DNA of 64,000 nucleotides from Podarcis melisellensis (taxonomy: Eukaryota): the NCBI GenBank assembly GCA_964234715.1, contig OZ174280.1, one strand, 5' to 3'. The position numbers and the translations under genes are program-made. This document shows positions 28,392-48,700 of the stretch, piece by piece; the stretch's first letter is position 1, and each line of letters begins with the position of its first letter. Below the pieces are notes generated by a model. The model saw nothing but the letters and a program-made list of their open reading frames with translations. It did not search any database and had not been told where the DNA came from.

Positions 28392-31300
28392 ATGAGCAGA
28401 TTGCTGGTGGGAGTGACCCTGGAGAGGATCTGCAAAGCTGTGCTGCTCTTATGTTTACTGCACTTCCTCATCATCATGATCCTCTACTTTGATGTCTACG
28501 CCCAGCGCCTGGACTTTTTCAGTCGCTTCAATATGCGCAACTCCTCCCGCACTCTGCCCTACGTCAACGTCTCTCGGCCTAACGGGACCGCCGGGCCTCT
28601 GGGCCCTGAGCTCCTGGCCCCGAGTGTGAAGTCCGTCAGTATGAACAGCACTGTCACCGAGAAGCCCTTACCACCTTGCCCAGAGATGCCTCCTGGCCTA
28701 GGTAAGATTACAGATGAGCTCTGTCTGCCTCATGCCTAGTCCTACAGAAGGCCCTTTAGTAGGGAAACTGTATTGCAGTTATTGGGTTTATTTGTGCCCT
28801 GCTTGCCACCTGCTGTTTCCCTGTCAATGCAAATATGTCAAGTGGCTTTGGCTCCTGATAATAGGAACTAGAAGATCTAGGAATCTGCAGAACAGGCATG
28901 GTATTGCAAATCATAGGCTCCAATAGCCTCTACCATTGGAGCCAATCCTGCAGTGGAAAAACAGTTGGGAATATGTGGACAGTATTTGTTGAAAGCTGGC
29001 AAACTGAATAGTGTTCTTAGTATATTTACAGTGATCAGATAGCGGATTTTTTATTTCCCTTTTTGCCATGGCAACTCATTGTCTCTTTCCAACCCCACTG
29101 TACCTAGCTGGTGCCTTTCTGCAAGTGGGCTATAAGTAATTGGGGAAAGGGCTCAGCTTCTGCACAGACACGGCTTAGTAGGGGCTACAAGAGTTAGCTC
29201 CTTCTTATGCTGATCTCTTTGAATGAATGCATGACCAGCTTTCACTCACCTGATGCCCTCCAAATGTATTGGACTATAACATGGCTGCGGCTGATGAAAC
29301 GTAGCACAAAAACATCTGGAAAGCACCTGGTTAGTGAAGACCAAAGTAGACCATCTCCTCACCCTAGGGGGCGAAACATTTAAGGCATAGAGAACTTAAT
29401 AGCCTTATTCCTGACAGGTGAATAAAGAGTTGAAGCATAAGCTTTGGTACAGTGGTACTTCTGGATGTGAACGGGATCCATTCCGGAGCCCTGTTCGCAT
29501 CCTGAAGTGAACGCAACCCGCGTCTACGCGTGCGCGGGTCGTGATTCGCCACTTCCGTGCATGCGTGTTATGTCATTTTGACTGTCTGCGCATGTGCGAG
29601 TGTCAAAACCCGGGAAGGCCCCGTTACTTCCGGGTCGCCGCAACGCGCAACCCGAAAATACTCATCCCGAAGCTACTTTAACTCAAGGTATGACTGTATT
29701 GATATTTAACTGGGGCTAAAACTTTTATTAAACAATGCAATCTGCAACAAGCAACAACCTTTCCTGTTAACTCTGAATCACTTAGCGGGGTATTCAAGTT
29801 AACTCTGCTTTGACTGTTTGCTGTCTCTATGCTTGATACATGTGTCGGTATTTAGGTTTCTTTGCTGGTTTTTTTCTGGGCGGTGCCCCACCAACTTGGC
29901 TGGTGAAAGGGACATGAGCTGTTTGTGTAAGTCAAGAGGCTGTGGCTGATGCATAGATAATGGAGTCCTTTCTCCTGCAGTGGGCCGGCTCCTTATCGAG
30001 TTCAGCACTCCCATGAGCATGGAGCGGGTGCAACGGGAAAACCCAGATGTGCGGGAGGGCGGCAAGTATTCTCCCCCAGACTGTGTGCCTCGCCAGAAGG
30101 TGGCCATCCTCATTCCGTTCCGGCACCGGGAGCACCACCTCAAGTACTGGCTGCACTACCTGCACCCGATTCTACGGCGCCAGAAGGTGTCTTACGGCAT
30201 CTATATAATTAACCAGGTGCGTAGAGAATGATAATGTGGGGGCAGTGGTGCAGTTGGGTCATTGAGTATTCTGGACTGAATGGTCTCATGGGCATCCCCT
30301 TCAGATGGTAATGTGCATTACTTCAAAATATGGTGTTCCAGCCCTGCTGTGCTCCAAAGCAGAAGGAGTAGAGCCTGGATATCTGACCCAAAGTTCTGTC
30401 CTAATGGCACCACTGATGCGGAAGAGAGCAAGATGGTTGGGTTTAGAACATATTGCCATCCGGTTCCCTTGAGAGGAACCTGATTAGGGAAAGCGGTATG
30501 TTAGTTTTCATGAATATATGCCTCTCTGTTCTGAGTGGAAGCAAAGGCTTCCTGCTTTGTGGGGGAAGTTGAGTGTGGGCCTTACAATGCACCATGAACT
30601 TTGCACCTATGGTAAGTGTGGAATGTGACGTAGATGCTTCTCACTTGCTTCTTGTTTAAGAAAAAATCAGGCCTGCTCTCTGACATGACAATAAATCTGC
30701 AATACAGTTGGTGGGACTTTGCAAGATCTATAAAGGGAGATATAACAGTTCTAGAAAAAAATAGGAAAACAGTAGAATGTTATTCACAATGAAATGTAAC
30801 AAGCGAGAGGTCAGCCAGATGCATCAGGTAAGAGTAAAAGGGTTTGTGGCAGTTGATGTGATCCTGTCCTTCATTATCTTTCCGTACAGTTTGGTGAAGA
30901 CACCTTTAACCGAGCTAAGCTGTTGAATGTGGGCTTCCTAGAAGCCCTTCGAGATGATGAGAGCTATGACTGCTTCATCTTCAGCGATGTTGACCTGGTG
31001 CCCATGGATGACCGGAATCTCTATCGCTGTTATGACCAACCCCGGCACTTTGCTGTTGCCATGGATAAGTTTGGCTTCCGGTGAGTTTGTGCACTTTGAT
31101 CTTTTTTGAAATGCCAGTGGCCCCTTGAAAATGTTCAGAGTGTCAGAGGCAAAATTGAAGGAGGAATATATGACTTTATTGCACACATAACTTATGGGCT
31201 CTCATTCTGTGTGGCTTGGACATTGTGGGGACCTGCAAGCTGTGAAATGTGTTTCTTAACTAGATTGCAGTACAGGAACCTCCCCCATTCTTAAGACTAC

Positions 31301-34300
31301 CATGTCACATTTCTTCATAATTTGCAGGGGTTTTGTACTTAAAAGTGGGGATATACAACGGCTTTGGGTGAATCCCAAGCCAAAGCAGGGTGCTTTGCAG
31401 GGATTCTGGGATTGTCTGAGACAAAGTGGAACCTCTTCAAGGATCCAGAGACAAAGTGGGGAGTTCCCAAAGTGCCTCATGGCACCGTGACAACTCTGAC
31501 AATTGTCTGCTGAAAGCAAAACTAATGTAGCTAACCTTAGTGTATAAGGAAAACACAAGGGGTGTGGAACAGCAGAAGTAGAACAAATGCCATGGTAAGG
31601 GGGACGGGATTCTGCTGTGATGTGACTGACAGGTCAAGCTTGTAACCAGAGGGAATGAGTTCACCTGGAGTCTTCAACCCCAGTGCTTTGTGAGGAGGAA
31701 AGGAAATCCTTTTTAGTTCTGTCCCCTGCCTCCCAAGATTAACTTTAAAAGTCCCTAGTTCACAAAAGTTGAACCAATTTGTCTGCCATTGGCAAGTTTC
31801 ATACCTAGGGAAACCTCTTTTGTGTCTGGTTTCCGAACAATTGCCCTCAAAAGACATGGGAAGTTTAAGTGGACACTTTTTACCCATCCCCAAACTGTGA
31901 AGGCTGTCCTTGTGGGGAAAACCAATGAAATTATCATTCAGAAATTTGACAGGATTCATCTTTCTTGGAGACTCTGATGCCTGCAAATTTCATCCAATAG
32001 TGGGGGAGGGGGAAAAGTTTCCTTAGAAAAATAACCATAAAATTTCAAAGGTACCTGACAGAAAAAAGCCCCACCCTGGAACTATTTGGCTGGCTGAATC
32101 CGCTGTGGAGCGGCAAATGTGCCTGCAAGGGGGAAAGGTATAGCTTAAAAAACAACAACAACCCAATAGTGAACGAGGGGAAATGAAATCTTGTTTTCCC
32201 CCAACTCAGACTCAGAAGCACTTGGGACTGAGGCATGTTGTTTTCTGAAGTACTGACTCAAGGTCCAAACTGAATCTTCTGTTTGGTGCACACCCCTAAT
32301 TTAAACTTTGCTGCCTCTTATATGACTAGATGAAATGCTCCAGGGAAGTCCTTGTGATACTACATTATGGAATAGGCACTTGCAAAACCTATATGAAGGT
32401 GATGTAAACAAGCAGACAGGATCCCCACGTGAATGTTCTGTGTTGCCTATATTCTTACCTGCCAAACATGGCAAAAGGAGATGGAGGAGGTACAGTGTGT
32501 ATAAAATGGAACCCTGCATTCCAGCTAAGGAGAAGGGAAATGGGAAGGATTTAGGAGAGACCTGATGCAGTGGGAGCAATGGGTGACATCACATGGCTGA
32601 TTTGGAAACTGGGATTTAGACTGTGTCAGGTGTAGCTTGGACCACCCAGGTTCTGTGCTCCTGAACCCATTCGTGGCTTGACTGATTCCCATCTCTCCTG
32701 CTTGTCCTCTGCAGGCTGCCATACTCTGGCTACTTCGGAGGTGTCTCTGGCCTGAGCAAGACACAGTTTCTGAAGATCAATGGCTTCCCTAACGAGTACT
32801 GGGGCTGGGGTGGGGAAGATGACGACATCTTTAACCGGTGCGTGAGAGGCTGGGCCAAGCCTAGCCAGAACTTGTTCTCTGCAAGTTGGTTGTAGTAGCC
32901 ATGTAGTCTGTTTTTCCGTGTGGTGTCTCCTGGGAATGTGCTGAGTGGCAGGGAACAGCATTCTCTTCTGGGGTGGGGTAGCTGTGCAAATGGCAGGTGG
33001 CAATATGCAACACCTGCCTTTCCTATAACAATGCTCCCAAATCTGAGACAGGGGGACATAGGCAGGTAGGTATTCCACAGCACATAACAGGCAGGGCCAA
33101 ATAGAAGGCCTGGGGAGCCAATACTCTGAAAGCCAGAAGGGGTTGGGGGTGCTGAGGACTGGAGGGTGAGGACTAACTCCAGCTTTATTTAGAATTTGCC
33201 CCCAACCTGTCTGCTGGTCTTTGAGCTGCACTTTTTCTTTACACAGGATCTCGCTTAATGGCATGAAAGTGTCACGTCCTGATGCCCGCATTGGGCGCTA
33301 CCGCATGATCAAGCACGAGCGTGACCGACACAACGAGCCCAATCCCCAGCGGTGAGAGAGACAATGTGCTTGCTAGCTCCCTACCTAGTCCATTGCAAGC
33401 TACATAAGGAGATAGAAAGCTCCCACATAATTTCTGCACCATTTCCCTGGGCACATAATGGCTTTCAAGCCTGATTTCCAATGGAATATAATCTTCCAGA
33501 CACATCTTCCCTTTTATAGCATACTACTCTACACCTCGTGAGGAGAGAGGGGCCACATTTGTTTGCCTCCCTGTAGAATGTACATGAAACAAACCAAGAT
33601 AGCCTACAAGTCCTTAGCCTTCCCCCAGAGAGTGTTTTCTATTACTGCGTGTGCATTCCTCTCTTTCTGATCTACCCCCAGTTTTAATTCCACTCTCTGC
33701 CTCTTCTAAGAGACACAGACATGAATCAGAGTCCCAACCATGCACCAGGTGTGTTTGGTTAAATCTATGTTATGCTAGTTCTAGGCAAGGAAAGAGAAAG
33801 GGCCTCCTGTCCTGTGCCCTAACATTTATTGTCTGGAACCAGAGAAAAGCCACAGCTGGCATGGTTTCAGGGCAATACACTAAACCTTATTTCATGAGAC
33901 CCTGACATTCCACTTGAGAAGGTTGTGTGGTGGTAGTAATCACCTATAATGAGAACTAAATGCAGTCACCATCCATGGCCCTCCAGGATCCTATGACGCC
34001 ATCACACTTTGCAACCTTGCTATATCATTTGACAGGGACTGTTGTTTTACAGCTGAGCTCTGGGTAGAGAAGCTCACTCTGTTACTTGGGACTTTCAACC
34101 TGGAAGGGCTGTGCATGGTGATTGTCCGTTCATGTGTTCATGAAACACAATTTCATTTCGGAAGTCCCAGTGCTTTGTATGCTGGAAATCTGACTTAAGA
34201 AATTGCTTTATTGTGTGTGGATAATGCCACATAAGGCTCTTCCCAAAATTCTTCCAAGTGGCCTGAGCTGTCATTAGACTCTCTATTCCAGGCTTCCTCA

Positions 34301-34677
34301 AACTCAGCCCTACAGATGTTTTTGGCCTACAACTCCCATGATCCCTAGCTAGCAGGACCAGAGGTCAGGGATGATGGGAATTGTAGTCTCGAAACATCTG
34401 GAGGGCCGAGGTTGAGGAAGCCTGCTCTATTCCATTCATCAAGGAATGGCTTGTAGGTTTAACTTGAATTAACCTAACTGCCTACTTTCATGTGTAAGAT
34501 GACTTTCTCTCTGGTTCTCCTGGCAGGTTCACCAAAATCCAGAATACCAAGGTGACCATGAAACGCGATGGCATTGGCTCGCTTCAGTACCGCCTGGTGG
34601 AGGTGGTTCGTCGTCCCATGTACACCAATGTAACCGTGGAGATTGGCCGCCCACCACCACGCCCCCCTCGGGGCTGA
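28392..34677 (+). CDS. B4GALT2: Beta-1,4-galactosyltransferase 2 (371 aa)
   Basis: Coding exons 28392-28701, 29981-30216, 30890-31080, 32715-32837, 33247-33351, 34527-34677 (TGA) total 1116 nt. N-terminus MSRLLVGVTLERICKAVLLLCLLHFLIIMILYFDVY is a type II anchor. GT7 motifs FNRAKLLNVG, DVD and WGWGGEDDD are present. C-terminus is PPPRPPRG. Synteny with ATP6V0B and CCDC24 agrees. Confidence 0.97.
29450..29696. mobile_element. Tigger/pogo-like MITE
   Basis: TA|CAGTGGTACTT...AAGGTATGACTG|TA imperfect terminal inverted repeats with a TA TSD, and a CpG-rich interior within an AT-rich intron. Confidence 0.75.
34289..34424. mobile_element. hAT (Buster/Charlie-type) MITE
   Basis: Perfect 13-bp terminal inverted repeat CAGGCTTCCTCAA / TTGAGGAAGCCTG. 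8-bp TSD CTCTATTC at 34281-34288 and 34425-34432. Confidence 0.88.
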
Positions 34678-36050
34678 CTCTTTGCTGCCTGGCTCTGCCC
34701 ATGGCCCCATGCATGAGGAGCTGTGCGGATCCCAGCCCTGACTGGTTCAGAGGACTGTGTCCTGGCTTGGAGGAGCTGTCTGCCTCCTTTGTGGGGATGC
34801 GGGAAAGGCCAAGACTACACCTTTGCCTTGCCCCAGCCTTTGGCTGAAGCCCATCTCCTGATCACTAGTCAGTTCTCCACAGTGCCCTTCACAGGTTGGG
34901 GAGGAAGTATGAGTGTGTCATGGTGCCTGGCGCAGCGCATGGGGGTCCTGGGCACAGCCAAGCCCCACTCCTGGCTGGAAGGCACTGAGAGCAGAGAAAC
35001 CTTGTGCAGGTTCTTGAACCTCCCTATCCTCTCCCAGAACTTTTCACAGAGCGGCATCCCTTAAGGATCCCGGAAGTACAGTACAGGTAGTTGTTTTCCT
35101 TTCCTCTCAGTGTGCAAGAGTGCCGTTTGAGCCTTCCTTCCAGGGGGTGGCCTGGCCTTACGACAAATGCCAGCTCGCAAGGTGTCCAGGTGGTTCACTC
35201 GTGCCCAGCTGAGGAGAAGCTCTTCCAAAGGAGAAGCTCTCATGGGCCTGGCCACTGCCCACCTCCATTCATGGCTTGGTGCTGTCCCCCTGCTGGGCCC
35301 TGGGTGTCACTTCTGGCTCCAGTAACACAGGGGCGTTTTATACAAAACCCTCATTAGAATACTTGAGTGCTTCCTGGGTTAGTTTGACAGGTAGCCTGTC
35401 TGTCAAGGGACAACAGGTCATTCTTCCTAACAGTGTTTGCTCTTCTGTCTGTGAATGGGGAATATTGGTTGGGCAGTGTGTGCTTCACTTTTCAGCAAGG
35501 ATGGAATCAAAATGGCATGGTTCGGCCTACTCTCTGGTGTGGGCTGGCTTCTCTTTTTTACAGGCACCAATGGGCCTATGGCCATACAGAACAGAGGAAG
35601 GTGAAGTTGGCTTCTTGCTGCCTGTCCCCTACCTCTCACCTCCAACCCACTTACCCCATACCAACCCTCACTCACCAATCAACCTTCCCGCCATCTGCCA
35701 GGCAACCTGCCGTTGACCACTCATCGTGCCCTCTTTGTCAAGCTGCCATCTGCCACCACCTGAGGCCAGGCCCCTGGGTCCGACCGTCTGCTCATGACAC
35801 ATGGTGGCCGTGTGCCTAATTCCTGGAGCTTGGAAGCTGCTGGTGTCCCTCATCTCTGGTTATGGTGCCTGGCAGGTAGAATCTCCTGTGCCGGTCCACT
35901 TTGGGATGGCAGCTGGGCCAGGCTTGAAGCCAGGCACCAGCGTGTTGCGCAGCCCAGGTGTTGGTGACTTTTGTACATTTGAATGTTTTGATCCCTTTTC
36001 AAGCCTATGGTGAATGCAGCACTGGTCACTACGATCAGACTTTTGTATTC

Positions 36051-36056
36051 AATAAA
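36051..36056 (+). terminator. Putative B4GALT2 polyadenylation signal AATAAA
   Basis: AATAAA about 1.37 kb after the stop, just before the convergent neighbour's 3' end. Confidence 0.7.
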
Positions 36057-36331
36057 GTTTCAAAACTTGGGAGACTCCTTGCCTATGGGATTCAGGTGGG
36101 GTCTGTGGATAGGGGCAACGCTGCAGGTTTATGCAATCTGCAGCCTCCCCTCCTTGGGCTCATCTTGGCAAGGTACAAAATGAAGAATTAAATTCGTTTC
36201 CAAATGAATGGCACCTCATTGTGCTTCCCCAACAAGTTTGTTTAAAGCAGGGACTGGGTTTTCTGGCCCAGGAAACTCTGGGCATAGTTACTCAGTCCAG
36301 AAGACAAGAGCGAACTATTCTACAAGGTTCT

Positions 36332-36337
36332 TTTATT
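36332..36337 (-). terminator. Putative polyadenylation signal of the VWC-domain gene
   Basis: TTTATT on + equals AATAAA on -, about 470 nt downstream of the TGA at 36804-36806. Confidence 0.6.
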
Positions 36338-36803: not shown

Positions 36804-39800
36804 TCAGGTGTGATGTGCACCTGTAGCCCGGCATCCCCGTAGCCGCTCACATTTAGCTAAGCGGTTTCCTTCCCAGTAACCGGCGTCCTGGCCATCATGA
36901 CAGTGGCAACGGGTGCAGGGCCCCACCCATATGCTCTCCCCAGCAGGAATTACGCGTCGCTGGCTCCCATCCACGTAGCAGTTGGGCCCTGTGGAGAGAC
37001 ATGTCCATGTATTAGAGTCTGCCATTGTTTGCAGAAGTCTCATCATGACTCTTAGAAGCAGAAATGGCAAGCAGTTTAAGAGTACATATGTAGGTGGGGG
37101 GCAACCCAGCCAGATGGGCAGGGTATAAATAATAAAATTATAAATTATTATTACTCCAGCCTTGCACCCCTATCCTCTACCGGGAGCTCACCTAGTGCCT
37201 GTTCGTCCACAGGTTCTGTGCTAGAGGCTGCTTTTGTACCAGGAGGACATTTTTCATTTTGGGGGGAGCCCCTCTTCTAACACTAGGGCCAAACACCTGC
37301 CAAATCCTTCAAGATGAGGTGGGGGCTACCAGGTGTCCCACCATCATTTCTAAGTAGGAGGCTTTCTGTTCAGTTAAGCAACCTTGTGTCTCGTCAGCTT
37401 GGCCCAATTCCTCTCACTTCCCTGCTCCAGTAGGACAGGGGCCCTGAACAGTGAGGGAGACAAAGTTCTCTCCCCCTTCTGGACAGCTTGAAGTGGAACA
37501 TTTGTCCCTTGCTGTGAAGGTGTGTCTTTCTCACCGTCCTCACAGGTGGGGCAGCAGTGGCCCTTCTCGTAGACTGGATTGACGCAGGGCGGAGGGGCGC
37601 AGTCTGCCACTAGGCAACGAGCGATGCCATCGAGGTCACAGGTACACTGCTCACACTCTGAGGGCTGTGAGAGACAAATATTGGTCAATACAGCAAGGCA
37701 GCTTTACGTGGACAGCACACGGTTATGATGATGCAGCTCCAGAACTATTTTGCATCAGTGGTGCAGAAGCTTATTCTTTTCTGAGAATTGCATTCCCTTG
37801 GGAATCTGTTCAGAATTGCATGCCAGTGGTGTGCTGGTCCAGAGTCAAAGTGGGTAGGGCACCTCCTCTGCCACCCTGTTTCCCTCCCCCTTTTCCTCCT
37901 AATGAAATTAGGCTGAGAGAAATAGGTTACCCATCCACCCCACACCACCATGTTGCAGAACTGACTGGATTTTGCGGTTCCAGAATGAATTAGTCATGTC
38001 TTCTGTCTGTAATTTGCAAAGAGATGTGTGTATGCAAGCAGGTGGGAAACTCATGCCTCAGATACTTAATTGGATTAGGCTCCTGGCTGCATCTTTGCTT
38101 ACCTGTATCTGTGCTTTAAGTATCACAAAAGAAATAAAAGGCCCATCATCTTCCTTTTTTTGTAATGTGTGAAGAAGCATTCCAAACTGAATGCATAGCC
38201 ATGGCAGTACTGGGATTATACCATCAGATGGCACTATCAACCAAAAATTGATAGGAGGGAGAAAAAGCTTCTGTCCCAATCTCCCTTGACTTTGTGTATC
38301 TTGTCAGCTCTGGCCAACTCAAGATTACTCTCAAATAATAATGCAGCTGGCCACTGGGGAAACTGACTGGTCATAAGAAAATATTGAATAGAGAAGACTG
38401 TGAGTGAGTGAGATATTGTCCCCAGTAGCACAGAACCATCAGGGATCCCAATATGCTAAAAAAGGCCCATGAATGTGTTTTGGAACCCATTACCCAATCA
38501 AGCTCCTTAAAATATCCAGCAAAGGAGACTGAAGTCATTTTCAGCACCTCACCTCTCATTCGCCTTCTCACTAGCAAAACATGAGGCTAATTCTAGCCAA
38601 GCCACATGCTTTTGTTCTCTGCCCTAAGGGGAAAGTTCCAAGATTCTACCTTCTGTCAAATTCCCTCCGTCCTGAACTGTCTGATTTCACACCTTCAGGG
38701 TGGGTGATGATAAAGACTGGTCTCCACTGAACTTCAAGTGGTTGCAGATAAAAACATTGGTCACTTGCTCTAGATCACTCCTCACAATACTTTAAAATAT
38801 TACAAAGCTGGAAGATGACATCAACATTTAACACCAAAAATCATATCTTAATGATATAATTGTCCATGATCATCTTTATAACTCGAGGGAAAGAGATTGC
38901 ACAACTTCACTGGCAAGTTGATATCCTGCCCTTACTACAAACCTACAGTACAAAGGAAAGTGTTTACCCTTCCTAATTACAGAACTTTTCTCTCTCTAGA
39001 TCTATAGCACTTGTCTTGCTTATAAGCAAATGCAAGATAACCTAGTTCCAGGAGGTGCTGGGAAGCAGCCCTATATTACTGTATCCACAACCCAGATGTT
39101 CTGGACCTAGAGCAAAATCTGGCCATCCCTAGTAAAGAACTGAGAAGCTTTGGCTGAGCAGAGTATTTTAGGGCAAGTTAGGCCCCAGCTGAATGGTTCT
39201 GGATAATCCAAAGCTTGCTTGCTATTTTATGATATTTCGGTTGGCCATAATAAAGTTACTATTTTGGGGAAAATTATGGCTCAATATTGCTTTGCAGAAA
39301 GCATTTACTTTCTGTGTACCTTTCAATAGAATTTTGTGTTTGGGTAAATGGGACAGGCCAAGAGATAAGTCATCAAACAGACACACAATAATTTGGTGTT
39401 TAGGTAACGGACAATTCACCTAGGAAGAACCCCACTGCCCATTCTTTGACTATATGTAGCAACTGGTCCTTTCTTCATCAATACATTTATTTTTTGCAAA
39501 CACTCAATTCATGATATCCAAAGAGGCATGGAGCCCAGGAATGGAGGGCTTTGATCTTCCACCTGCAGCCTCAGGGCCAGAATTTGACTCCCTTCGGCTA
39601 GTGCAGGCTTAGTGCCAAAAATACTCCTTTCCGAACCCACCCTCAATTGTCCAAGTCAGCCATGCTAGAGATTGTTTGGTCTGACTCAAGTCCTAAAATA
39701 AACTACACACATTTTTGGCAGCAACAGACAATAGCCAGAAGCAAGGTCTGAACAGGTCAATGTCAGGCCTAAAAAATGGATGAAAATGAAATTCAATTAG

Positions 39801-40575
39801 TCAAAGGATGCTCAGCTAGGTACTACAGCCAATAAAATTGCCTTCTGAATTATTGGTTTTATGGGAATATCTTAAGAGCACCTACAGCTTCATAGAGCAC
39901 TTTTGATTTGGTGCTTCTCACCCCTTTTGGAAAAATGCAATTTATTAGTTTTGTTTGTATTTTCTTTTGCTTCAGCCAGTAATGAACCAACTATAAAGAC
40001 AGCGTTCCTGCTTCCAGTCTCTTACTCTCCTGCCTAGGCCTCCCTTTCAGAACAAGATTTAAGAAACAGAAGGGACTGCTAGAGATTCTTTTTCAGGAGC
40101 GCTCGCTTTTTCTCCTGCTTTTGAATATCCTCACTTTGCCTATCCATCACCTATTCATCCCTGCCCACCTCGCTCTAGATTCCTTCTCATGCCACCCCTT
40201 TGCCTAATTCTCCCTTGAATGCCTTACCTGGAAATGCTGCCCCAGCTCATACACTTGTCCACGGTGCTCACAGCCAACCCTTTCGCAGCGTGGGCAGCAG
40301 TCGCTGGGGTAGTGGCTGACGTGAATGCAGGCAGGTGGCAGAGCGGTGCAGTCCGTGCGGGCGCAGGCGGGCCCCTCCGCTGTGCACTCGCACTGGGTGC
40401 AGTGGTCACTGTCCAGGAAATACCACTCCCCAACATAGTACAGGCTCCCGTTGGCATCGCACGTGGTCACTGGCCCTGCCAGTCCTGGGATGGGCACCAG
40501 AGTCAGCAGCAGCACTAAGATCAGCTGTGCCAACGGAAAGGGCATCGCTGAACTCGAGGGACAGATGCCGGGCAT
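36804..40575 (-). CDS. Secreted von Willebrand factor C domain protein, brorin (VWC2/VWC2L) family paralog, 210-220 aa
   Basis: Exons on -: 40575-40228 (ATG...CAG|gtaagg), 37664-37535 (tcacag|...G|gtgaga), 36988-36804 (ccacag|...TGA), total 663 nt in frame. Protein: MPGICPSSSAMPFPLAQLILVLLLTLVPIPGLAGPVTTCDANGSLYYVGEWYFLDSDHCTQCECTAEGPACARTDCTALPPACIHVSHYPSDCCPRCERVGCEHRGQVYELGQHFQ|PSECEQCTCDLDGIARCLVADCAPPPCVNPVYEKGHCCPTCEDG|PNCYVDGSQRRVIPAGESIWVGPCTRCHCHDGQDAGYWEGNRLAKCERLRGCRATGAHHT. It has a signal peptide, two 10-Cys VWC domains (CxxCxC...CCPxC) and a 6-Cys partial module. An alternative ATG lies at 40545. Confidence 0.92.
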
Positions 40576-41510
40576 GGGAGTTGGCGAGAGGGAGGAGCAG
40601 AGCAGGAGTAGGGAAATGAAGCGGAGGAGAGCTGGCGGGGAAAGTGGGCATCCAGTCCGCTCCAATGCCGCCCGCGGGGTCCCGCCGGGAGGTTGCCTGC
40701 TGAAGCTGCGGCTAAGAACCGCCCTGGCGTGCCTCGGCCTTTGTGTAGCCGCCGCCCGGCCCGGTCCGCCCCTTCTTGCAACCCGAGCCCGCCCAGGGGC
40801 ACAACACCCCCTCCCCAACGGAGCGGGCGGGACCGGGGCGGTGGGAGGGACCTGGCCCCCTATCTGCACCTCAGGAAAAGCCTACTAAGACAAGTCCACT
40901 GTGCTCCCTCTCCAAACCCCTCGAACACTTATCCGGGGAGCCAATGCTGCGTCTCCCCAGTTCCCAGTCTCCGCGGCCTCCAAAACACGCGCGGCGCTGG
41001 ATCTCTCTCTCTCTCTCCCCACCCCCTTTATTCCTAGGAACATTAATGGGCAAAGAAAGAAGTTTCTCAATACTGTACTGTTGCCAAAGCAAAAAGCCAG
41101 TGGGACCCCTTCCGGATGAAAACTGGCCGACGTGTGGCTGCTCTTTACCTCCGATTGCTTGGGTGCAAGCGCGGGCGCACCAAGAGCTTCAACGCACACG
41201 CTTCCTTCCCCCGAGACCCCCGTCTCCACGCTCGACCGACATCCTGTCTGCCTCGTGGGCACGGCTCCTTTAAGAGGCGAGGCTTCAGAGGAACGCGGCG
41301 GGGCGTTTCCATGGAGACGGCGAGTTTATATTCCAGAGAGTTAGAGGGTGGAGGGGGCTCGCATAGGGCAAGACGCCTGGCCCTCCGCCCGGTGTCGCCG
41401 GTGAGGGCTACCGCAGTTATGTCCGTGGGTCCGTAGTAAGAGAGGAAGTGTGGGGAGAGTAAAAGGTCTGGGGCGGAAGTGGGCTCGGTGGGCCGAGACG
41501 TAGGTGAGTT
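40330..41510. promoter_or_regulatory. CpG island and bidirectional promoter shared by the VWC gene (-) and CCDC24 (+)
   Basis: CpG-rich stretch between divergent genes. GC boxes, ETS-type GGAAGTG at about 41444 and 41475, and candidate CCDC24 non-coding exon donors CCG|GTGAGG (after 41400) and TAG|GTGAGT (after 41503). Confidence 0.78.
41305..41318. promoter_or_regulatory. RFX X-box motif GTTTCCATGGAGAC
   Basis: Near-palindromic match to the X-box (GTTNCCATGGNAAC) close to the probable CCDC24 transcription start. Confidence 0.6.
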
Positions 41511-41569
41511 AAGCACTGGGGAGCAACTATGGGGAGGGATAATGGGCAATAGGTTACATTTGGGGCTAT

Positions 41570-41751
41570 AAACAACTACCTGACATTCAGAAGACATCTG
41601 AAGGCAGGGTCCCCTGAAGTTCAGGGAAGTTTTTAATGTGTGACATTTTAATGTATTTTTAATCTTTGTTGGAAGCCGCCCAGAGTGGCTGGGGAAACCC
41701 AGCCAGATGGGCGGGGTACAAATAAATAACAACAACAACAACAACAACAAC
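41570..41751 (+). mobile_element. L2 LINE 3' end with (CAA)n tail
   Basis: GGAAGCCGCCCAGAGTGGCTGGGGAAACCCAGCCAGATGGGCGGGGTACAAATAAAT followed by (CAA)n. A shorter copy of the same tail lies at about 37097-37150. Confidence 0.65.
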
Positions 41752-42737
41752 GATTAACGGGAATTAGTATGACTCTCAAGGTTAATGTGAGGGGATGAGT
41801 TTGGTATATGGCGAGCAAGAAAAATTATATGCTCTTATAATTTGTAACATGATTTGTAGACAGTAGTGCAACTCAGGGGGAAAGTACAGAGCACCACAAA
41901 AATGGGGTGCCTCAAATGGCCATTCTAGAGAGTGTCAGGTGATGGAGTCAGGAACAAACGACCTGTGGCAGCACCTGGGCTGGCATGGGCATGTTGTGGT
42001 CTATTGGCGCTGATGGTAGTCACAGCGGCATCCTTGTTTTCTACAACAGTTTTAGTCAGAGGGTCGTTAGCCAGGCATGTACATGGCACTCAATTCTATT
42101 TTTTACTTTTATTTTCATCCTTGGTGCTCCCCCACCCGAATAAACGTGTTTAACATCAGGGCAGCAGAAGCAAATTCCATTGTATTCCTGTAATGCTAGT
42201 GCTATGACTTAAGTGAGTTTAGAATGTGAAACTGTACATGCTCAGAGTATTTCACAACCATTTATCTATTGTGCTAATGTATCAGGAATGTAGGAGCAGT
42301 TATAAAACATGGGAATGGCTTAACTGACAACTGACAAATGTAGTATGTGTGACTGTCTAATGGGAGAGGGGTGTAAAACCATGGATGTGGCCAGGATTTT
42401 AGTTGGGGAGGGACAAAGTTGTTGAGCTTTTCTTGGGAAATCATGGGTGAAAATACCTCATAAATAGGACATTGCGGGGGGCCAGGCTTCTGTTGGGGGG
42501 GGCAGAACCTCACATAATTGAATACTTTCAATGGTTTTCAATAATATTTGTGAATCTCGGGAGGACAGCAGCCCATGTGTAAAACCATTAAGTTCAGTGT
42601 CTAAAATTACCTAGGTGCACCACTGCATGTTGCACCAAGTACAGTAGTTGTGATGTGGAGCTTCTACTCACTGTCTCATTGGCACAATCTTTTTTTCCTT
42701 TAAAGCCTCATTTATCGTGGAATCGGATACAGCACCC

Positions 42738-45700
42738 ATGTTGCCCTTGCCTGGTGCATCTGGGGAATCCTTGCAGTCCGTGCCATCACTCTGGACAATG
42801 GTAGAGGAACAATTAGCACCCAGTGAGAGGCTTGAGGCGAAAGCTATCTTGGGTCATGGCCTTGTGGAACGGAGCTTGGAACTTCATGCTGAGGTTAAGT
42901 ACCAAAATACTGGATCTCCTATTCAAAATGATTCACAAAAGAGCAGAACAAACAAACCACCTCTCTTACTACACAATTTAGAAGTGGCTGGTGACAAAGG
43001 GATATCTGAATAAAGCATCAAATCTAGGTTTCATCAGCTAAAGAGGCAGCACTAATTTTGTAAGGGGATTTGACTGATGAAAGGGCCCGCCTTTCATGTC
43101 TATAGATTTGAGTGGAGTGGACAGTGCTAAAATTGAGTGGAGCTAAGGGAGGGCTTATAAATTGTATTAAGCCCCCTTTCACTGAGCAATGGCCACTAGT
43201 TTTGGCATACATGCATTTTCATATAGAGTAGCATTCATGTGTATGATAATCTTGTATGGAGAAAACCTCTGGTTTGCCACTTACATCTGCTTTGAGTGCT
43301 GTTTAATTTAAGTGAAAGGAAAGCATATCTGAGAAGGCAAGTCAAGGAGGGGATAAAATATTGCAACCACCCCCTCCCTGTTTGACAAGGTCCCCATTTG
43401 CCAGCTCCCAGCTCAGCTGGTTCCTAATGCTTGGCCAGAGCCCCTAATCCATGCTATTCCAGGCCCTTTGTTCTCCTCCAGCCATTCATGCCCTTTCTTT
43501 ATTCAGCATGGTCCTGACTGCAGCTGAGAAGAACAGTAAACATCCCAGAGGCTTTTCACATGGTAATTGCCTTACCTCCTCCTGAAACCAGAAGAGCAAG
43601 CACAGCACACCCTGACAAGATGGCACCTTTTTCACTCTATCACTTCTTCATGTTAGAGCTTTGCTTGAGATCCAGCCCCCCCCATTGTGATTAGTGACCC
43701 CTCCCCAGCCTTTATGGGGTCTCTCACCTGGCTGTCTATTACCTCTTCATCACAAGCCTGATAAATGTAGCCCAGGTACTGCCTGTCTCCCTGCTGTGTT
43801 CTTGTATGTGTCTCTGCTCCCCTCCCCAATTGGATATCTGAGAGGCCGCCCAGGGAAGCAGCTGTACCATAACGTTCCTCTTGTGGATGTGTGGGGCCAG
43901 AAAGGGAGTTCTGGCGCTCGCCTGCCTTACAAATATCCTGCAGATATTTTTGCGGCATGACCTTGACTTTCCTCATGGGGGGAGGGAGAGAATGATTGTG
44001 GGTGGGCTGTCTGCAGCTTTGCACCTTTTATGGAGTGTACAGACGGCAACAAAGTAGTGCCCTCTTGCCAGCTACATTGGAATGACAGTGTCCTGGCTGG
44101 TGTTCTTATCTTCCGCAGCCAACTTTGCCCATTTTCTGCAAAAGAGTTGTTTTTTTAAAACCTAAAAACTTCACTCTTAATCCTAAAATACACTTCACAT
44201 AAACTAATAGCCTCATAGTCTGTTCCCAGTCTTTGGGGAGATGCAACGTTTTACTGAATTCAGTGTGCTCTCACACACATTTATCACATTTGAGGCATCT
44301 TTTATTCCCCTGATGTATGACATACTTCCAAAAAGTTGTCAGTTCCCTGACTGTGGCCTTTATGAAATGTAATTGTCTACCATCAGGTGAGTAATTAACT
44401 CATGGCTAGGTATTGGTTTTCTTTTCTTGCAGGCAGGCACCTGGCTTGATTTCCAGGTGTGCAGAATACCAATACTGGGAATGGGAGTGCAACGTGTATT
44501 TTTAGGTTGTGTCAGTGCTCCATCATTTGGGGAGGTGGAGGGTGGGGGAAAGATTACTTTGAGAAAGTTACTGCAGTTTGTGTCAATGTGCACATGTGTG
44601 AATTTCTGCATGTGGCAATGCACTCCAACCCCTTCCCTATTTACAGGTGCGGACACTGTTGGAATTACATCAGGAGTTGCAGTCAGGCTGCCTTGGAGTG
44701 GAGCAAAGCCCACTGCAAGCGGATGACAGCTGGGCCTTGCTGGCAGCTCCCCCCAACCTCAAGGAGCTGGTCAGGGAGGAGATCCGCCTTCTTCTAATTG
44801 GCCTACAGCAGAAGGCATCGCAGGAGGGCAGGTACTGGAGATTGGAAGAGAAGGGACTTGAGAGAATTAAGGGCTGAGCTGAGGGGGAGCAGGTAGTAGG
44901 GATAGAAGAAAAGCAAGCAGAATATCTTAGGACCTGAAGCCTATTTGATATAAAAATGAGCCCATTGGTTTCCAACTGATGTGGCTGGTGGTATTTATGT
45001 GTGCGGAATGGGTGAGTTTTATATCATCTTTTGGCCAAAGCAGTCTAGATTGAGGAAGCCATAACTATTTGTTATGAGAGGCTTAGAGTTTCATGGGACA
45101 AATCAGTTAGGAGGCTAGACAATAACCTGATTGTCTCTCTTAACAAGAACAGGATGAGGGAAACCTCTGATTCCACTCAGATATAAATAAGTCCAGTGCC
45201 ACCTAGTGACTAAACTATATATTTACACTATTTATACAGTATTCTTTCTCCCTTTGCCTTCTAAGGGTGACTGTTCCAGAAATGCTTACTAGGAAATATC
45301 AGCTCCAATGCAATTTAATTGGCAGTTCCAGTATAGTTTCAACATGATTGCCACTCGGATGGCCAATGTCCAGCAAAAATAACCTGTACCAAACATATGT
45401 TTGCACCACACACCTCCATCTGTAACTTGCGCTCCCATTCAAGTGCAGCTTGTCAGTTTGTGTGTCTCTCTAGTCTTTTTTATATGTAGAATTAATTCCA
45501 GCCTTACATTCCCATTCTTTGGGTCTCAATCATATAACCTTTGTCATTCCCACTTAGCTCCCTTACATCATGCAGGAATTGCATTGCTGAGCGCTTCTAT
45601 CAAGAATGCCAGTCCTGCTAGTGCGTTTGTTTTTTATGGTGTGTTCAGTCCATAGCCTGAGGCTGAGATTATGTCCCACCTCCAAGTTCAAAGTGAGCAT

Positions 45701-48700
45701 TCATCCAAGTGAGCACTGGGATCAGCACCTGCTGGAACCCTTGCCTGAGGATTTGCTCCCTGCCTTAGCCCTGTGTAACCAATGAATAGTTCAGTGAAGG
45801 CACGGATTAGAACAGGCTGGCTAGTAAGGGATGAGCTCTCAAACTCCTCATGCTGGAGTTGTTTGTACCATGTTGCCGTATCGGAGAATCCCTTCACACC
45901 CTTCAAACCTTTCTACTATCTCTCAGTCACAACCTGAAATTCTGCATTTGTTACTTACTTTCAAATAGCTCCCCTCTTGTTGAATTGACATGAGCACAGG
46001 TCATGGCTCCCTGTGTTCTGCCTAGAACTGGGTGGTCCAATAAATGGCCTGAGGGCTGCATGTGGCCCTCAAGGCCTGTTTTGTTGGCCCGAGCAACATT
46101 TGACACCCTCCCCAGCCCTCATGCTGCCTTCCCAAAGCCAGATAAACAAGGCACTAGGCTTAGCGAAGGAGGTGTACAGGATCTGGCAGGGTCCTAAAGT
46201 CCTCCTGTCTCCTACCCAAAGCCTAATTGCTACTTCCCTGGAGTGCTCTAGGACCCTCCCAAAGCCTGTTGTCTCACTTAGCTGGCTTTGGGAAGGCAGG
46301 GCAAGGACTGGGGGGTGGCATCAAATTTTTGCCTCAGTCTCCCCACTGCACAATACAGTATGTGTTCTGTTGGTTCTGTGTCAAACTACTTTTGTGGTCT
46401 ACCTTGGTATGGAAAATTGGACCTCACTGGGCTCTTTAGTCCAGCTTGTTTTTCCTTTTAGGCTTCTATTCATTCCAGCTACTGGGTGGTTTTGTGACCC
46501 TGCACTGCCACCAACTGGTCTTCTCTTGTCCTTGTCAGCCCAAAGACTGGGGATGAACAATTGCCTTATAGCTGTATGTTTTCTGCTTCACAGGAACCAA
46601 GATTGTGCCATCGCTAAATACAGCCCTCATGTGGTCACCTTTGCATTGAAGGCAAATGCTGGCAATAGTCAGTCTTCATCTGGGAGCAGTGCTCTAATCA
46701 GGTAAGACTGAAGGAAGCTGCAGCCTCCACACAATGAGCCTCTGGCCTGTGACTTGTTCTTACCCGGAACACCATGAACTGTATCACCACAGGAGGTCTC
46801 AGAATCCAGGACTGATTTTGTCTGTAGGAAGCCTAACACCACAGAGTGCCATATGCCATAGACTTAGAAACCTAGCAGCGATAGGTTCTTTTTGCATCTA
46901 TGGGCAGTTTGGGGCTGATCACTATTATCCCATTTGATCCTTATACAAGTTCCAGGAGCGGGGTCTTGCAATGAGTTGGCCTCCCTGCTGGTTTCAGTCC
47001 CATTGTGGCATTAATCTAGAAATGTGTTTGCATTATTTATATAGATATGCATATTATGCATATGTAGAATTAGCAGTGGTGTGCCCACTCAAATTATAAG
47101 TCTCCATTTTGGATAGAACCTTAATGTTAAGTCAGAGAGGCTGTGAAATTACAGACTCAGCCAGCAAAGATGGGGCAATACCAATGGGGTGGGGTGGGGA
47201 GACTCACTGAGCAAGCAGAAATCTTTGTGCAGGGCTTCCACTGACAGAGATGTAGGTGAATCCCACCCCTAGTATGTTTTCCTTTTATATCTAGTTGAAG
47301 AAACCAAGAGCAGGTTGGTATGCGGAGGTACAGTCTCTCAAACATCTTGGTGAGGTTCCTGGGCATATCAGCTCCAGTTTCTGTGGTGTTAAGTACCACC
47401 TGTAGGTGAGTTTCAGAATGAGTTCCCTTCTTTTGGCTGATATGGACTTAAAGGGAGGTATAGACCACATTCTAGTCCATTGGGTGGGGTTAATTTCATA
47501 GCCTATATCATGCTCCCATGGTTCTTTGATTGCATCAGTGTTGTGGGGATTTACTTTAGTTTGTTTTGGAGAAATGGGTGTGCTGTTGTGGGGATGTTTT
47601 CGATGGTATCCCCATGAATTTTTGTTCTTCTGCAGTTATGGTTGGCATGGTCAGCCCTGTTAGGAATCTTCTGATTTCATGTTCAGGTGGGTTGCGGGAG
47701 GTGTATAGGTTGGCATAAAATTCTGAGGTTATTTCTTTGGTGGTGGATGTTAACGCAATCGTCTTTTATAGTGACACAGTATATACCGTATTTTTCGCTC
47801 TATAACACGCACCAGACCATAACACGCACGTAGTTTTTAGAGGAGGAAAACAAGAAAAAAAAAATCTAAATGAAATAGTGGATATATGATTTTTGTGGTT
47901 CATGCTGTGGCCACAGACATGTGATCTGACAGTGAGTTTGGAGTAGCCCAATGCAAAAATCCTGAGGATCCATGTGGATCCATGCTTTGTAACCACGGGG
48001 GAGGGAAGAAAGGGGAACCATGGATCCTGTGCTCACGACTGCAGCAAATCCCCCCCGCCACCCGCAGGCATTCGCTCCATAACACGCACAGTCATTTCCC
48101 CTTACTTTCTAGGCGGAAAAAAGTGAGTGTTATGGTGCAAAAAATACGGTACTTGTTTTGAGTGATTCCCCCCCCCCCCCGCATCTGTTTGCTAGTAGTC
48201 TGGAGTTCTTCCCTCCATATTCGTAAAAGCATTGTTTAGGATATAGGATGTTAATCATTGTTTTATTGATTTCTGGAGAGTCAATTTCCCTTCTTTTTTG
48301 TTCTATGAATTTAATGAGGGTTTTTTTGGCTCCTGTTTGTTTGTAGTGTGATGACAAGGTTGAAATGTCTTGTTCTAATTTACCAATTTTTGAGGAAGTT
48401 TGTTTTTTAAGGGATGTCCTCTCCTTTATGTAAGCTCCTCTGATGACCACTTTCATTGTGTCCCAGAGAAGGGGGGTTGCAATGTCGTCTACATCGTTGT
48501 CCTTAAAGTAGTTTTGGAGAGTTTTCAAGAGACTCTCTAGGTAGTTCATTTGTGGTTAGGATGGGGCTGAAGGACCATGATTGGGTGGTTTATGCTTCCT
48601 CTCCTGTTAGGAGGGTTGCTTCTACTGGGGCATGGTCTGTGATTTTAATGTTCTGTGTCTGAGTCCTAAGAAGCATGCTAGTTCGGTTTGATGAATCCCT

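Follow-up and report, generated by a model that had tools for sequence, protein, structure and literature searches.

Two secreted proteins, brorin (VWC2) and brorin-like (VWC2L), antagonise BMP signalling (PMC5407822); both have also been identified as constituents of AMPAR complexes, where their role is unknown (PMC6502786). In the literature, these two proteins are treated as the whole family (PMC5407822, PMC6502786). VWC domains also have partners other than BMPs, as in NELL2 with ROS1 and NICOL, and in VWC2L, which binds CD36 in a screen (PMC9578707). Here, a window of 64,000 nt (the whole stretch of DNA that was analysed) from Podarcis melisellensis (GCA_964234715.1, contig OZ174280.1) was studied, in which an initial annotation had proposed a third gene of the brorin family. 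The explanation that best fits the data as a whole, to which a probability of roughly 0.85 is given, is that of a third-lineage gene kept by selection, coding for a probably secreted VWC protein with a BMP-type role assigned by homology.

The gene consists of three exons on the minus strand, with a coding sequence running from 40575 or 40545 down to 36804 and a precursor of approximately 210-220 aa. Coding exon 1 (40228..40575, minus strand; Pfam VWC2L_1st) comprises 116 codons from the first ATG and is followed by a GT donor at 40227-40226; it encodes the predicted signal peptide, the whole of VWC domain 1 and the start of VWC domain 2 (15 residues). The latter domain is interrupted by intron 1 (37665..40227, minus strand; GT...AG, phase 0). 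Coding exon 2 (37535..37664, minus strand; 130 nt, AG before and GT after; Pfam VWC2L_2nd) begins in phase 0, ends in phase 1 and carries the remainder of VWC domain 2, including CLVADCAPPPCVNPVYEKGHCCPTC. After intron 2 (36989..37534, minus strand; GT...AG, phase 1), the codon split as G and GG across exons 2 and 3 is restored in ...CEDGPNC.... Coding exon 3 (36804..36988, minus strand; AG before; Pfam VWC2L_C) encodes the C-terminal module with six cysteines, in the order GPNC...IPAG...CHCHDGQDAGYWEGNRLAKC..., and ends with the stop codon TGA at 36806-36804. With GT/AG at both introns and the stop in place, the intact three-exon reading frame with canonical splice sites described earlier was confirmed. 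A second in-frame ATG (40545-40543) aligns with the annotated start of the gecko orthologs (MPF..., 210 aa). As it displays a better -3 purine than the first ATG, position 40545 is the likelier translation start, rather than 40575.

A CpG island was measured at 40000..41750 (GC 0.57-0.66; CpG o/e 0.49-0.81, where the whole window averages 0.25), in agreement with the CpG promoter announced previously. It spans exon 1 and the gap up to CCDC24, is common to both genes, and is presumed to be the bidirectional promoter region of the VWC gene and CCDC24. A candidate polyadenylation signal, recognised by its hexamer match only, is located 466 nt past the stop (AATAAA, 36332..36337, minus strand); the signal mentioned in the initial annotation does exist at 36337-36332, but outside the range 36804-40575 that had been given for the gene.

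The predicted signal peptide (40477..40575, minus strand) covers residues 1-33 from the first ATG, or 23 residues from the second. Inspection of the sequence revealed a hydrophobic core, LAQLILVLLLTLV, and an end in GLA followed by G, with small residues at positions -1 and -3, and the alignment showed that the position of this signal-type N-terminus is conserved among orthologs, all of which fits a putative signal peptide as first proposed. In the AF2 model of the ortholog P0005, a low-confidence helix is present at the N-terminus. Cleavage would most likely take place after GLA. An N-glycosylation sequon N-G-S (40444..40452, minus strand; residues 42-44) lies three residues past the first cysteine; in the alignment, the motif ANGS is retained all the way from lamprey to squamates, but turtles have lost it. 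VWC domain 1 (40285..40461, minus strand) extends from Cys39 to Cys97 and contains 10 cysteines with the clade-specific spacings C-x2-C and C-x9-CC.

The exons served as single queries in every search, Pfam included. Exon 1 matched VWC2L_1st (E 1.8e-14, 53.8 bits), exon 2 matched VWC2L_2nd (E 4.7e-10, 40 bits), of which the profile positions 1-15 correspond to the end of exon 1, and exon 3 matched VWC2L_C (E 2.6e-17, 62.9 bits). With a cut-off of 27 bits in each case, all three domains of the brorin family were recovered above the curated thresholds. The cysteine count is 10 + 10 + 6, and all 26 cysteines are intact in the lizard gene. The sequon, the two 10-Cys VWC domains and the 6-Cys module reported initially were hence all retrieved. 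The alignment also supports the earlier remark that the predicted signal peptide leads almost directly to VWC1, without the acidic stretch of VWC2L. The product is predicted to be secreted and N-glycosylated, with some 187 residues in its mature form; in the precursor, the signal peptide would be followed at once by VWC1, VWC2 and the 6-Cys C-terminal module.

For structure prediction, the ortholog P0005 (87-93% identical per exon) was used as a stand-in for the whole protein. Its AF2 model (pLDDT 78.8) resembles the tandem VWC domains of NEL/NELL2 and the single VWC domains of CCN3, collagen IIA and the BMP-2-bound CV2-VWC1. The best structural matches were the NEL/NELL2 VWC arrays in non-BMP complexes (NELL2 with ROS1 and NICOL). 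A sequence search of the PDB with exon 1 gave marginal matches only (CV2 VWC1, E 0.56). By homology, a secreted and N-glycosylated third-lineage protein would use its VWC domains to bind BMP-type ligands extracellularly, as brorin and brorin-like do, and this binding would damp BMP signalling; the chances of such an activity are considered about even. A synaptic role for the protein is purely conjectural.

Alternatively, the gene may encode a genuine secreted third-lineage VWC protein with a conserved non-BMP partner, serving another receptor or a matrix component as ligand or co-factor. This view, possible though somewhat doubtful, would accommodate the NEL/NELL2 arrays in non-BMP complexes as top structural matches, the binding of CD36 by VWC2L in a screen (PMC9578707) and the AMPAR interactions of brorin and brorin-like (PMC6502786). 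Identity between lizard and lamprey reaches 84-88% in VWC1 and VWC2 (88% in exon 2), yet only 35-45% with the BMP-binding paralogs, a pattern compatible with a different and strictly conserved partner. It has to be weighed, however, against the fact that BMPs are bound by both characterised family members and by CV2 VWC1, the closest VWC domain whose function is known, and that domain order and many motifs (VADCA.P.CVNPVYE, GPNC) are shared with these BMP binders.

Orthologs of the lizard gene are widespread. Members of the third clade were identified in lamprey, sharks, ray-finned fish, lungfish, amphibians, turtles, tuatara and squamates. Protein searches delivered 65 close matches at 58-94% identity, from squamates to sharks, and a lamprey cluster at 84% identity. 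Among the approximately 130 named cluster members are Anolis carolinensis XP_008107712, Sphenodon, more than 10 turtles, Ambystoma and zebrafish NP_001013504.2 (zgc:113531/LOC541359). NCBI and UniProt hold entries of this clade for well over 100 species under the label 'VWC2L-like', and the gene is present, unnamed, in zebrafish, Xenopus-type frogs and axolotl. No paper on zgc:113531, LOC541359 or vwc2l in lamprey was found in the literature, nor any published functional study of a third-clade ortholog; the description of the gene as an uncharacterised paralog holds, although it is automatically annotated as 'VWC2L-like' in many genomes.

Searches of 5.8 and 1.84 billion proteins yielded no third-clade protein from any mammal, bird or crocodilian, and these three groups are also absent among the named cluster members. 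Judged on predicted proteomes rather than genomes, this absence from the protein sets suggests that the gene was lost in mammals and in archosaurs. The idea of a gene retained in reptiles and lost in mammals was accordingly right for the protein sets searched as far as mammals are concerned, and too narrow for the remainder, since the distribution is pan-vertebrate and includes lamprey. That the absence reflects an annotation or assembly artefact, with the gene persisting unassembled or unannotated, is considered unlikely. Bird assemblies often lack GC-rich genes, the searches covered predicted proteomes only, and the turtle orthologs display a skewed composition and a fast-evolving VWC1. Nevertheless, hundreds of well-annotated mammal and bird genomes stand behind the collections with zero matches, orthologs from lamprey, shark and fish were readily found at 62-84% identity, and B4GALT2 and CCDC24 are, as we assume, direct neighbours in human.

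The genomic neighbourhood of the VWC gene was analysed next to its coding sequence. Ten long ORFs around the gene gave no Pfam match; the exons of the neighbours are short and were identified via synteny and in-frame pieces. On one side, a convergent B4GALT-family gene occupies 29950..34700 on the plus strand (Pfam Glyco_transf_7N 1.2e-31 and 7.1e-21, Glyco_transf_7C 6.2e-22). Its coding exons recognised in the window lie at 29950-30228, 30869-31081, 32686-32883 and 33233-33352, with the last one at about 34462-34680, all on the plus strand, and are collinear with the gene annotated in Gekko and Phrynocephalus (371 aa). On the other side, part of a divergent CCDC24 gene was found at 42735..46702 on the plus strand (Pfam CCDC24 5.9e-11 at 44617-44865 and 0.0074 at 46580-46702), collinear with the CCDC24 genes of the same two lizards. 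Both Pfam and collinearity support the location between B4GALT2 and CCDC24, with the neighbour identified as a B4GALT-family member; the name B4GALT2 is presumed from the adjacency to CCDC24 at human 1p34.

The order CCDC24, third-lineage gene, B4GALT is the same in the window and in Gekko, Phrynocephalus and Esox. B4GALT adjoins the gene in Emys and Petromyzon, and CCDC24 does so in Rhinatrema. The survey of synteny that had been suggested was in part realised, with neighbours kept in lizards, turtle, caecilian, pike and lamprey. The linkage with B4GALT has been kept since before the divergence of lampreys and jawed vertebrates, and that with CCDC24 on the other flank is at least as old as bony vertebrates.

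The locus contains an intact gene that is kept by purifying selection. Values of dN/dS were 0.070-0.090 for the lizard gene against three squamates, far from the value near 1 against which the initial annotation had proposed to check, and 0.06-0.17 when turtle, caecilian, pike and lamprey served for comparison. Evidence for splicing came from mRNA contigs of related species and not of this lizard. The gecko-like Logan contig L007 (SRR31912492; 1001 nt) contains an uninterrupted 633-nt coding sequence and matches the window as three adjoining blocks that end at 40228, 37664/37535 and 36988 (block limits 40548-40228, 37667-37534 and 36989-36769); the first splice junction is also present in contig L008. 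The predicted junctions 40228/37664 and 37535/36988 were in this way matched, albeit across species. The zebrafish ortholog has a curated, cDNA-based NP_ record. A decaying or unexpressed relic with a fortuitous open frame, for which only the origin of the transcripts from other species could be invoked, is highly improbable: it is contradicted by dN/dS of 0.07-0.09, the 26 intact cysteines and the intact splice sites and stop, and also opposed by the spliced mRNA contigs in related species and the CpG-island promoter.

For phylogenetic analysis, the window was represented by exon 1, mis-spliced 50%-cluster representatives of VWC2 and VWC2L (P0142, P0132, P0126, P0099) were replaced by better orthologs, and the primate proteins P0213 and P0284 were left out. 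A clear gap was already seen in phmmer searches, with E<=1e-41 within the own clade and 1e-6 to 1e-4 for VWC2 and VWC2L. The third clade shares only 35-45% identity with these two characterised members. In the ML trees, VWC2 and VWC2L together with the other cyclostome copies were set apart by a branch of 3.2-3.6 (support 100/98-99). The third clade, including zebrafish, lamprey and exon 1 of the window, was monophyletic at 90/84, and exon 1 was nested among the squamate members (99/94-95). The third-lineage gene was excluded from both the VWC2 clade (100/95-97) and the VWC2L clade (98-99/94-96), and AU tests rejected its grouping with VWC2L (p 0.014) or, even as a sister group, with VWC2 (p 0.02). 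Cysteine spacing gave the same partition, with the states 2/9/4 in the third clade and Ciona and 1/7/6 in all VWC2, VWC2L and other cyclostome copies. By its sequence relationships, the lizard gene is a member of a third brorin-family lineage and neither VWC2 nor VWC2L, as was claimed at the outset.

Both paralogs coexist with the third-lineage gene, VWC2 in Candoia, Esox, Rhinatrema and Geotrypetes, and VWC2L in Anolis carolinensis and Danio. Squamates possess their own VWC2L, 92% identical to the bird protein (P0341 from Anolis, P0369 from Pantherophis), and a separate brorin (Candoia, Lacerta, Anolis sagrei). That the lizard gene is a VWC2L or VWC2 ortholog or a recent translocated copy, as the NCBI label 'VWC2-like' of its orthologs and the match of all three VWC2L Pfam domains could suggest, is the least tenable explanation of all, ruled out by the 100/99 branch, the AU tests (p 0.014 and 0.02) and the spacing, and opposed by the separate VWC2L and brorin of squamates and by a locus conserved since lamprey.

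According to the trees, the third lineage predates the VWC2/VWC2L split; this age leans on the rooting and on three shared indel states, because the Ciona root branch is very long (about 5 changes per site). Its separation precedes the divergence of lampreys and jawed vertebrates. The alignments further indicate that it has retained a tunicate-type cysteine spacing and a short N-terminus. A broader scenario, in which the third lineage would be the conservative and slowest-evolving descendant of a single ancestral chordate brorin, with a strictly conserved extracellular partner and an independent loss in mammals and archosaurs, and with VWC2 and VWC2L, the two members studied in mouse, as the derived branch, is put forward tentatively, at a little under even odds.

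With the third-lineage reading, the brorin family gains a rooted history and a third member, which predates the other two, is far better conserved and was found, among the major vertebrate groups tested, in all but birds, crocodilians and mammals. It also offers an example of a highly constrained, probably secreted signalling protein apparently lost in mammals. In fish and frogs, the third member may buffer or confound knock-down or knock-out of brorin and brorin-like. As it is not a new type of molecule and gene models already exist, the advance is one of classification and of drawing attention to an unstudied gene.

Among known systems, VWC1 of Crossveinless-2/BMPER (PDB 3BK3, with BMP-2) and the single VWC domains of CCN3 (5NB8) and collagen IIA (5NIR) display the same fold per domain (TM by target 0.54-0.60); for CV2 VWC1, which has a BMP-contacting N-terminal clip, sequence similarity to exon 1 is marginal (E 0.56). 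Brorin is secreted, as is predicted for the window protein, with the same order of VWC2L_1st, VWC2L_2nd and VWC2L_C, 10+10+6 cysteines, the GPNC and IPAG motifs and a C-terminal loop (TYEEGTWRIERQ in brorin). It differs by a ~130-residue N-terminal extension ahead of VWC1, which is lacking in the window protein, by the spacing 1/7/6 instead of 2/9/4, by three more residues ahead of IPAG, and by an identity of 35-46% per exon and a separate clade; the human VWC2 locus is presumably near IKZF1, unlike the B4GALT/CCDC24 locus. VWC2L is similar in length (about 220 aa), in its three domains and in the CxVADCAxPxCVNPVYE motif of the second VWC. However, its VWC1 is preceded by an acidic stretch some 30 residues long, missing in the window protein, and by DYRGKGC; it shows the spacing 1/7/6 instead of 2/9/4, falls in a separate clade and is without the NGS sequon at the corresponding site. 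In bony vertebrates, VWC2L has a shortened C-terminal loop (HNGDWWKPAQ), and GQDAGYWEGNR in the last module, taken for an insert in the initial annotation, turned out to be the ancestral loop. The VWC2L-like protein of Ciona intestinalis (XP_026691205) shares all three spacing states (2/9/4) and, in its C-terminal module, a YW.G loop, so that the architecture of the third clade looks ancestral, although this protein is very divergent (terminal branch, about 5 changes per site) and has an N-terminal extension of about 90 residues. The closest counterparts are the annotated 'VWC2L-like' orthologs, which share the clade, exon structure, 2/9/4 spacing, NGS sequon, CHDGQDAGYWEGNR loop and CCDC24/B4GALT neighbourhood; they show no difference of substance from the window protein, and the nearest squamate models are 87-94% identical to it per exon.

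Inspection of the minus strand of the window revealed a clean three-exon coding model for a brorin-family gene (VWC gene). Exon 1 (40575-40228; 116 codons) ends with ...CAG followed by GTAAGG, exon 2 (37664-37535) is preceded by ...CACAG and followed by GTGAGA, and exon 3 (36988-36804) is preceded by ...CCACAG and terminates with TGA at 36806-36804. Intron phases are compatible (0 after exon 1, 1 after exon 2), the split codon yielding ...CCPTCEDGPNC.... The product starts with a hydrophobic signal-type segment ending at GLA/G, with the first cysteine five residues further, then an N-G-S sequon, and a cysteine count of 10 + 10 + 6. Because a second in-frame ATG at 40545 displays a purine at -3 and aligns with the start annotated in gecko orthologs (MPF..., 210 aa), it would be the likelier start of the CDS; a putative signal peptide follows either ATG. 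Analysed singly against Pfam, all three exons exceeded the curated thresholds, matching VWC2L_1st (exon 1, E 1.8e-14), VWC2L_2nd (exon 2, E 4.7e-10) and VWC2L_C (exon 3, E 2.6e-17). A candidate polyA signal (AATAAA, minus strand) is located at 36337, 466 nt past the stop, and a CpG island at 40000-41750 (GC 0.57-0.66, CpG o/e 0.49-0.81 vs 0.25 for the whole window). The intact CDS with canonical splice sites, the cysteine pattern, the NGS sequon, the CpG promoter and the polyA signal listed in the initial annotation were thus all recovered.

Several checks proposed in that annotation were carried out, among them those of the splice junctions and of dN/dS. The junctions 40228/37664 and 37535/36988 were both matched by a Logan transcript contig (L007, SRR31912492) of 1001 nt, 88-95% identical to Gekko. 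It harbours an uninterrupted 633-nt CDS, and three abutting segments of it aligned at 40548-40228, 37667-37534 and 36989-36769 of the window. This contig is the spliced mRNA of a related squamate, with junctions exactly as predicted. The first junction was also detected in a second contig (L008), apparently amphibian, and annotated orthologs have exon breaks at the same residues. The dN/dS ratios, obtained from Nei-Gojobori counts summed exon by exon with the exons unjoined, were 0.070-0.090 among squamates (0.078 vs Gekko, 0.070 vs Phrynocephalus, 0.090 vs a gecko mRNA), and 0.06-0.17 vs turtle, caecilian, pike and lamprey, distances over which dS is saturated.

The window was collinear with two squamate loci in tblastx. 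Pfam analysis of in-frame pieces identified, on the plus strand, Glyco_transf_7N (29950-30228 and 30869-31081), Glyco_transf_7C (32686-32883 and 33233-33352) and CCDC24 (44617-44865 and 46580-46702). The gene order is therefore B4GALT-family gene (+), VWC gene (-) and CCDC24 (+): the VWC gene converges on the B4GALT-family gene and, on its other side, forms a divergent pair with CCDC24 over the CpG island. The galactosyltransferase is presumably B4GALT2, which also neighbours CCDC24 in human 1p34. One single CpG island takes in the 5' end of the VWC gene as well as the gap up to CCDC24, which suggests a common bidirectional promoter; loci of gecko, agamid, pike and caecilian retain the divergent pair. 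Region 35200-36130, located between the convergent 3' ends, is 65-90% conserved with Gekko and Phrynocephalus in all reading frames and is therefore non-coding. With a plus-strand AATAAA at 36051, it probably represents the B4GALT 3'UTR, whose end would lie some 280 nt away from the candidate polyA signal of the VWC gene.

All homology searches were done with single exons. When 5.8 billion proteins were searched by word index, the exon-1 portion of the long ORF 40869-40207 gave 65 matches (58-94% identity), from squamates, frogs, caecilians, lungfish, gar, teleosts, sharks and one turtle. Cluster look-ups added many lizards and snakes (including Anolis carolinensis XP_008107712), tuatara, more than ten turtles, salamanders, rays, zebrafish (NP_001013504.2, 'uncharacterized protein LOC541359 precursor') and four lamprey species, the lamprey protein being 84% identical to exon 1. 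The gene, proposed earlier as retained in this reptile, thus ranges from lamprey to squamates. No bird, crocodilian or mammal member was present among the 65 matches or the cluster lists. This absence from predicted proteomes agrees with the proposed loss in mammals and suggests that birds and crocodilians lost the gene as well. Across 1.84 billion cluster representatives scanned exhaustively with phmmer, there was a sharp gap between the new clade (E<=1e-41) and VWC2/VWC2L representatives (1e-6 to 1e-4; 35-45% identity).

CCDC24 (divergent), the VWC gene and a Glyco_transf_7N/7C gene (convergent) follow each other in Gekko, Phrynocephalus and pike; the B4GALT gene lies downstream in the turtle Emys and sea lamprey, and CCDC24 upstream in the caecilian Rhinatrema. 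As B4GALT adjoins the gene from sea lamprey to squamates, their linkage dates back to the origin of vertebrates. In Rhinatrema bivittatum (LR584396.1, 1-25053), CCDC24-type genes flank the VWC gene on both sides and two distinct 215-aa new-clade proteins (XP_029473681, XP_029474255) are encoded on one chromosome, as if the CCDC24-VWC pair had been duplicated locally.

Phylogenetic analysis included named brorin (VWC2) orthologs, true VWC2L (brorin-like) orthologs, cyclostome copies, a Ciona protein and new-clade members, with window exon 1 entered as a partial sequence. Two ML trees from careful LG+C20 runs were concordant. VWC2 (100/95-97) and VWC2L (98-99/94-96) each formed a clade, and a branch of 3.2-3.6 changes/site (100/98-99) separated the new clade from VWC2, VWC2L and the other lamprey and hagfish copies. 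With the Ciona root, the new clade including lamprey members and window exon 1 was monophyletic (90/84), and exon 1 was placed within squamates (99/94-95). Assignment of the gene to VWC2 or VWC2L was ruled out by this branch and by AU tests rejecting the grouping of the new clade with VWC2L (p 0.014) or VWC2 (p 0.02), in agreement with the distinct paralog initially proposed. The VWC gene coexists with brorin in Candoia, Esox, Rhinatrema and Geotrypetes, with VWC2L in Anolis carolinensis and Danio rerio, and with three other brorin-family copies in Petromyzon. The brorin family numbers at least four to five genes in lampreys (P0378, P0384, P0387, P0186, P0404), one in the new clade and the others basal to or within the VWC2/VWC2L group. 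Two short proteins without the long brorin N-terminus, P0399 (Paramormyrops 'si:dkey-283b1.7', 230 aa) and P0381 (Rhinoraja 'brorin', 232 aa), were placed outside the main VWC2 clade, sister to it (99/96 and 100/94); they may represent a further fish paralog lineage or merely fast-evolving copies.

The fold was analysed using the annotated ortholog P0005 (87-93% identical per exon) as stand-in. Its AF2 model, built from an alignment of 35 new-clade members, reached a mean pLDDT of 78.8, and >85 across the two VWC domains. Structural matches were tandem-VWC NEL/NELL2, single VWC domains of CCN3 and collagen IIA, and CV2 VWC1 in its complex with BMP-2; no solved structure of any brorin-family member was found in the PDB. 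Brorin and brorin-like are secreted BMP antagonists (PMC5407822) and constituents of AMPA-receptor complexes (PMC6502786). By homology with them, the VWC domains of the putatively secreted product would capture BMP-type ligands extracellularly, the likeliest mechanism, with a probability of about one half. The chief alternative, a strictly conserved partner of another kind, is kept plausible by three points: the new clade is extremely conserved, it shares little identity with its paralogs, and other VWC proteins have non-BMP partners (structural matches; PMC9578707).

The gene itself is no discovery: well over 100 genomes already contain a model of it, and the zebrafish record is curated and cDNA-based. 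Full-text literature searches found no paper naming or studying it, and the brorin literature describes two members only. No report appears to exist of the third lineage as such, of its ancestral type, its pan-vertebrate range or its apparent absence from mammals, birds and crocodilians.

The alignment showed that the lack of a stretch before the first VWC domain, already annotated, is real and typical of the new clade. The NGS sequon is kept from lamprey to lizard, and turtles are without it. Turtle orthologs (Emys locus; P0064, P0450) keep all cysteines, but their VWC1 is strongly diverged (57-60% identical to lizard vs 84% for lamprey), with a skewed amino-acid make-up and a dN/dS of 0.17. 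The Petromyzon ortholog P0404 carries an acidic poly-glutamine C-terminal tail of about 30 residues, which jawed-vertebrate orthologs lack. In the last module, the new clade is marked by three residues added before IPAG and by a near-invariant CHDGQDAGYWEGNR. The GQDAGYWEGNR stretch, initially described as an insert, is none: an equivalent loop is present in brorin (TYEEGTWRIERQ), ray VWC2L and Ciona (NYGRYWAGSDQ), and is shortened in bony-vertebrate VWC2L.

Three spacings (Cys2-Cys3, Cys7 to the CC pair, and VWC1-VWC2) were scored as discrete characters independent of the trees. As spacing 2/9/4 is common to every new-clade member and both Ciona sequences (and one unnamed distant match), the new clade appears to retain the tunicate-type architecture, and VWC2 and VWC2L together would form a derived branch, with a root that depends on a single, very long Ciona branch and on three indel characters. 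In contrast, the 1/7/6 spacing was seen in each VWC2, VWC2L or other cyclostome copy inspected, and in 37/39 unnamed distant matches.
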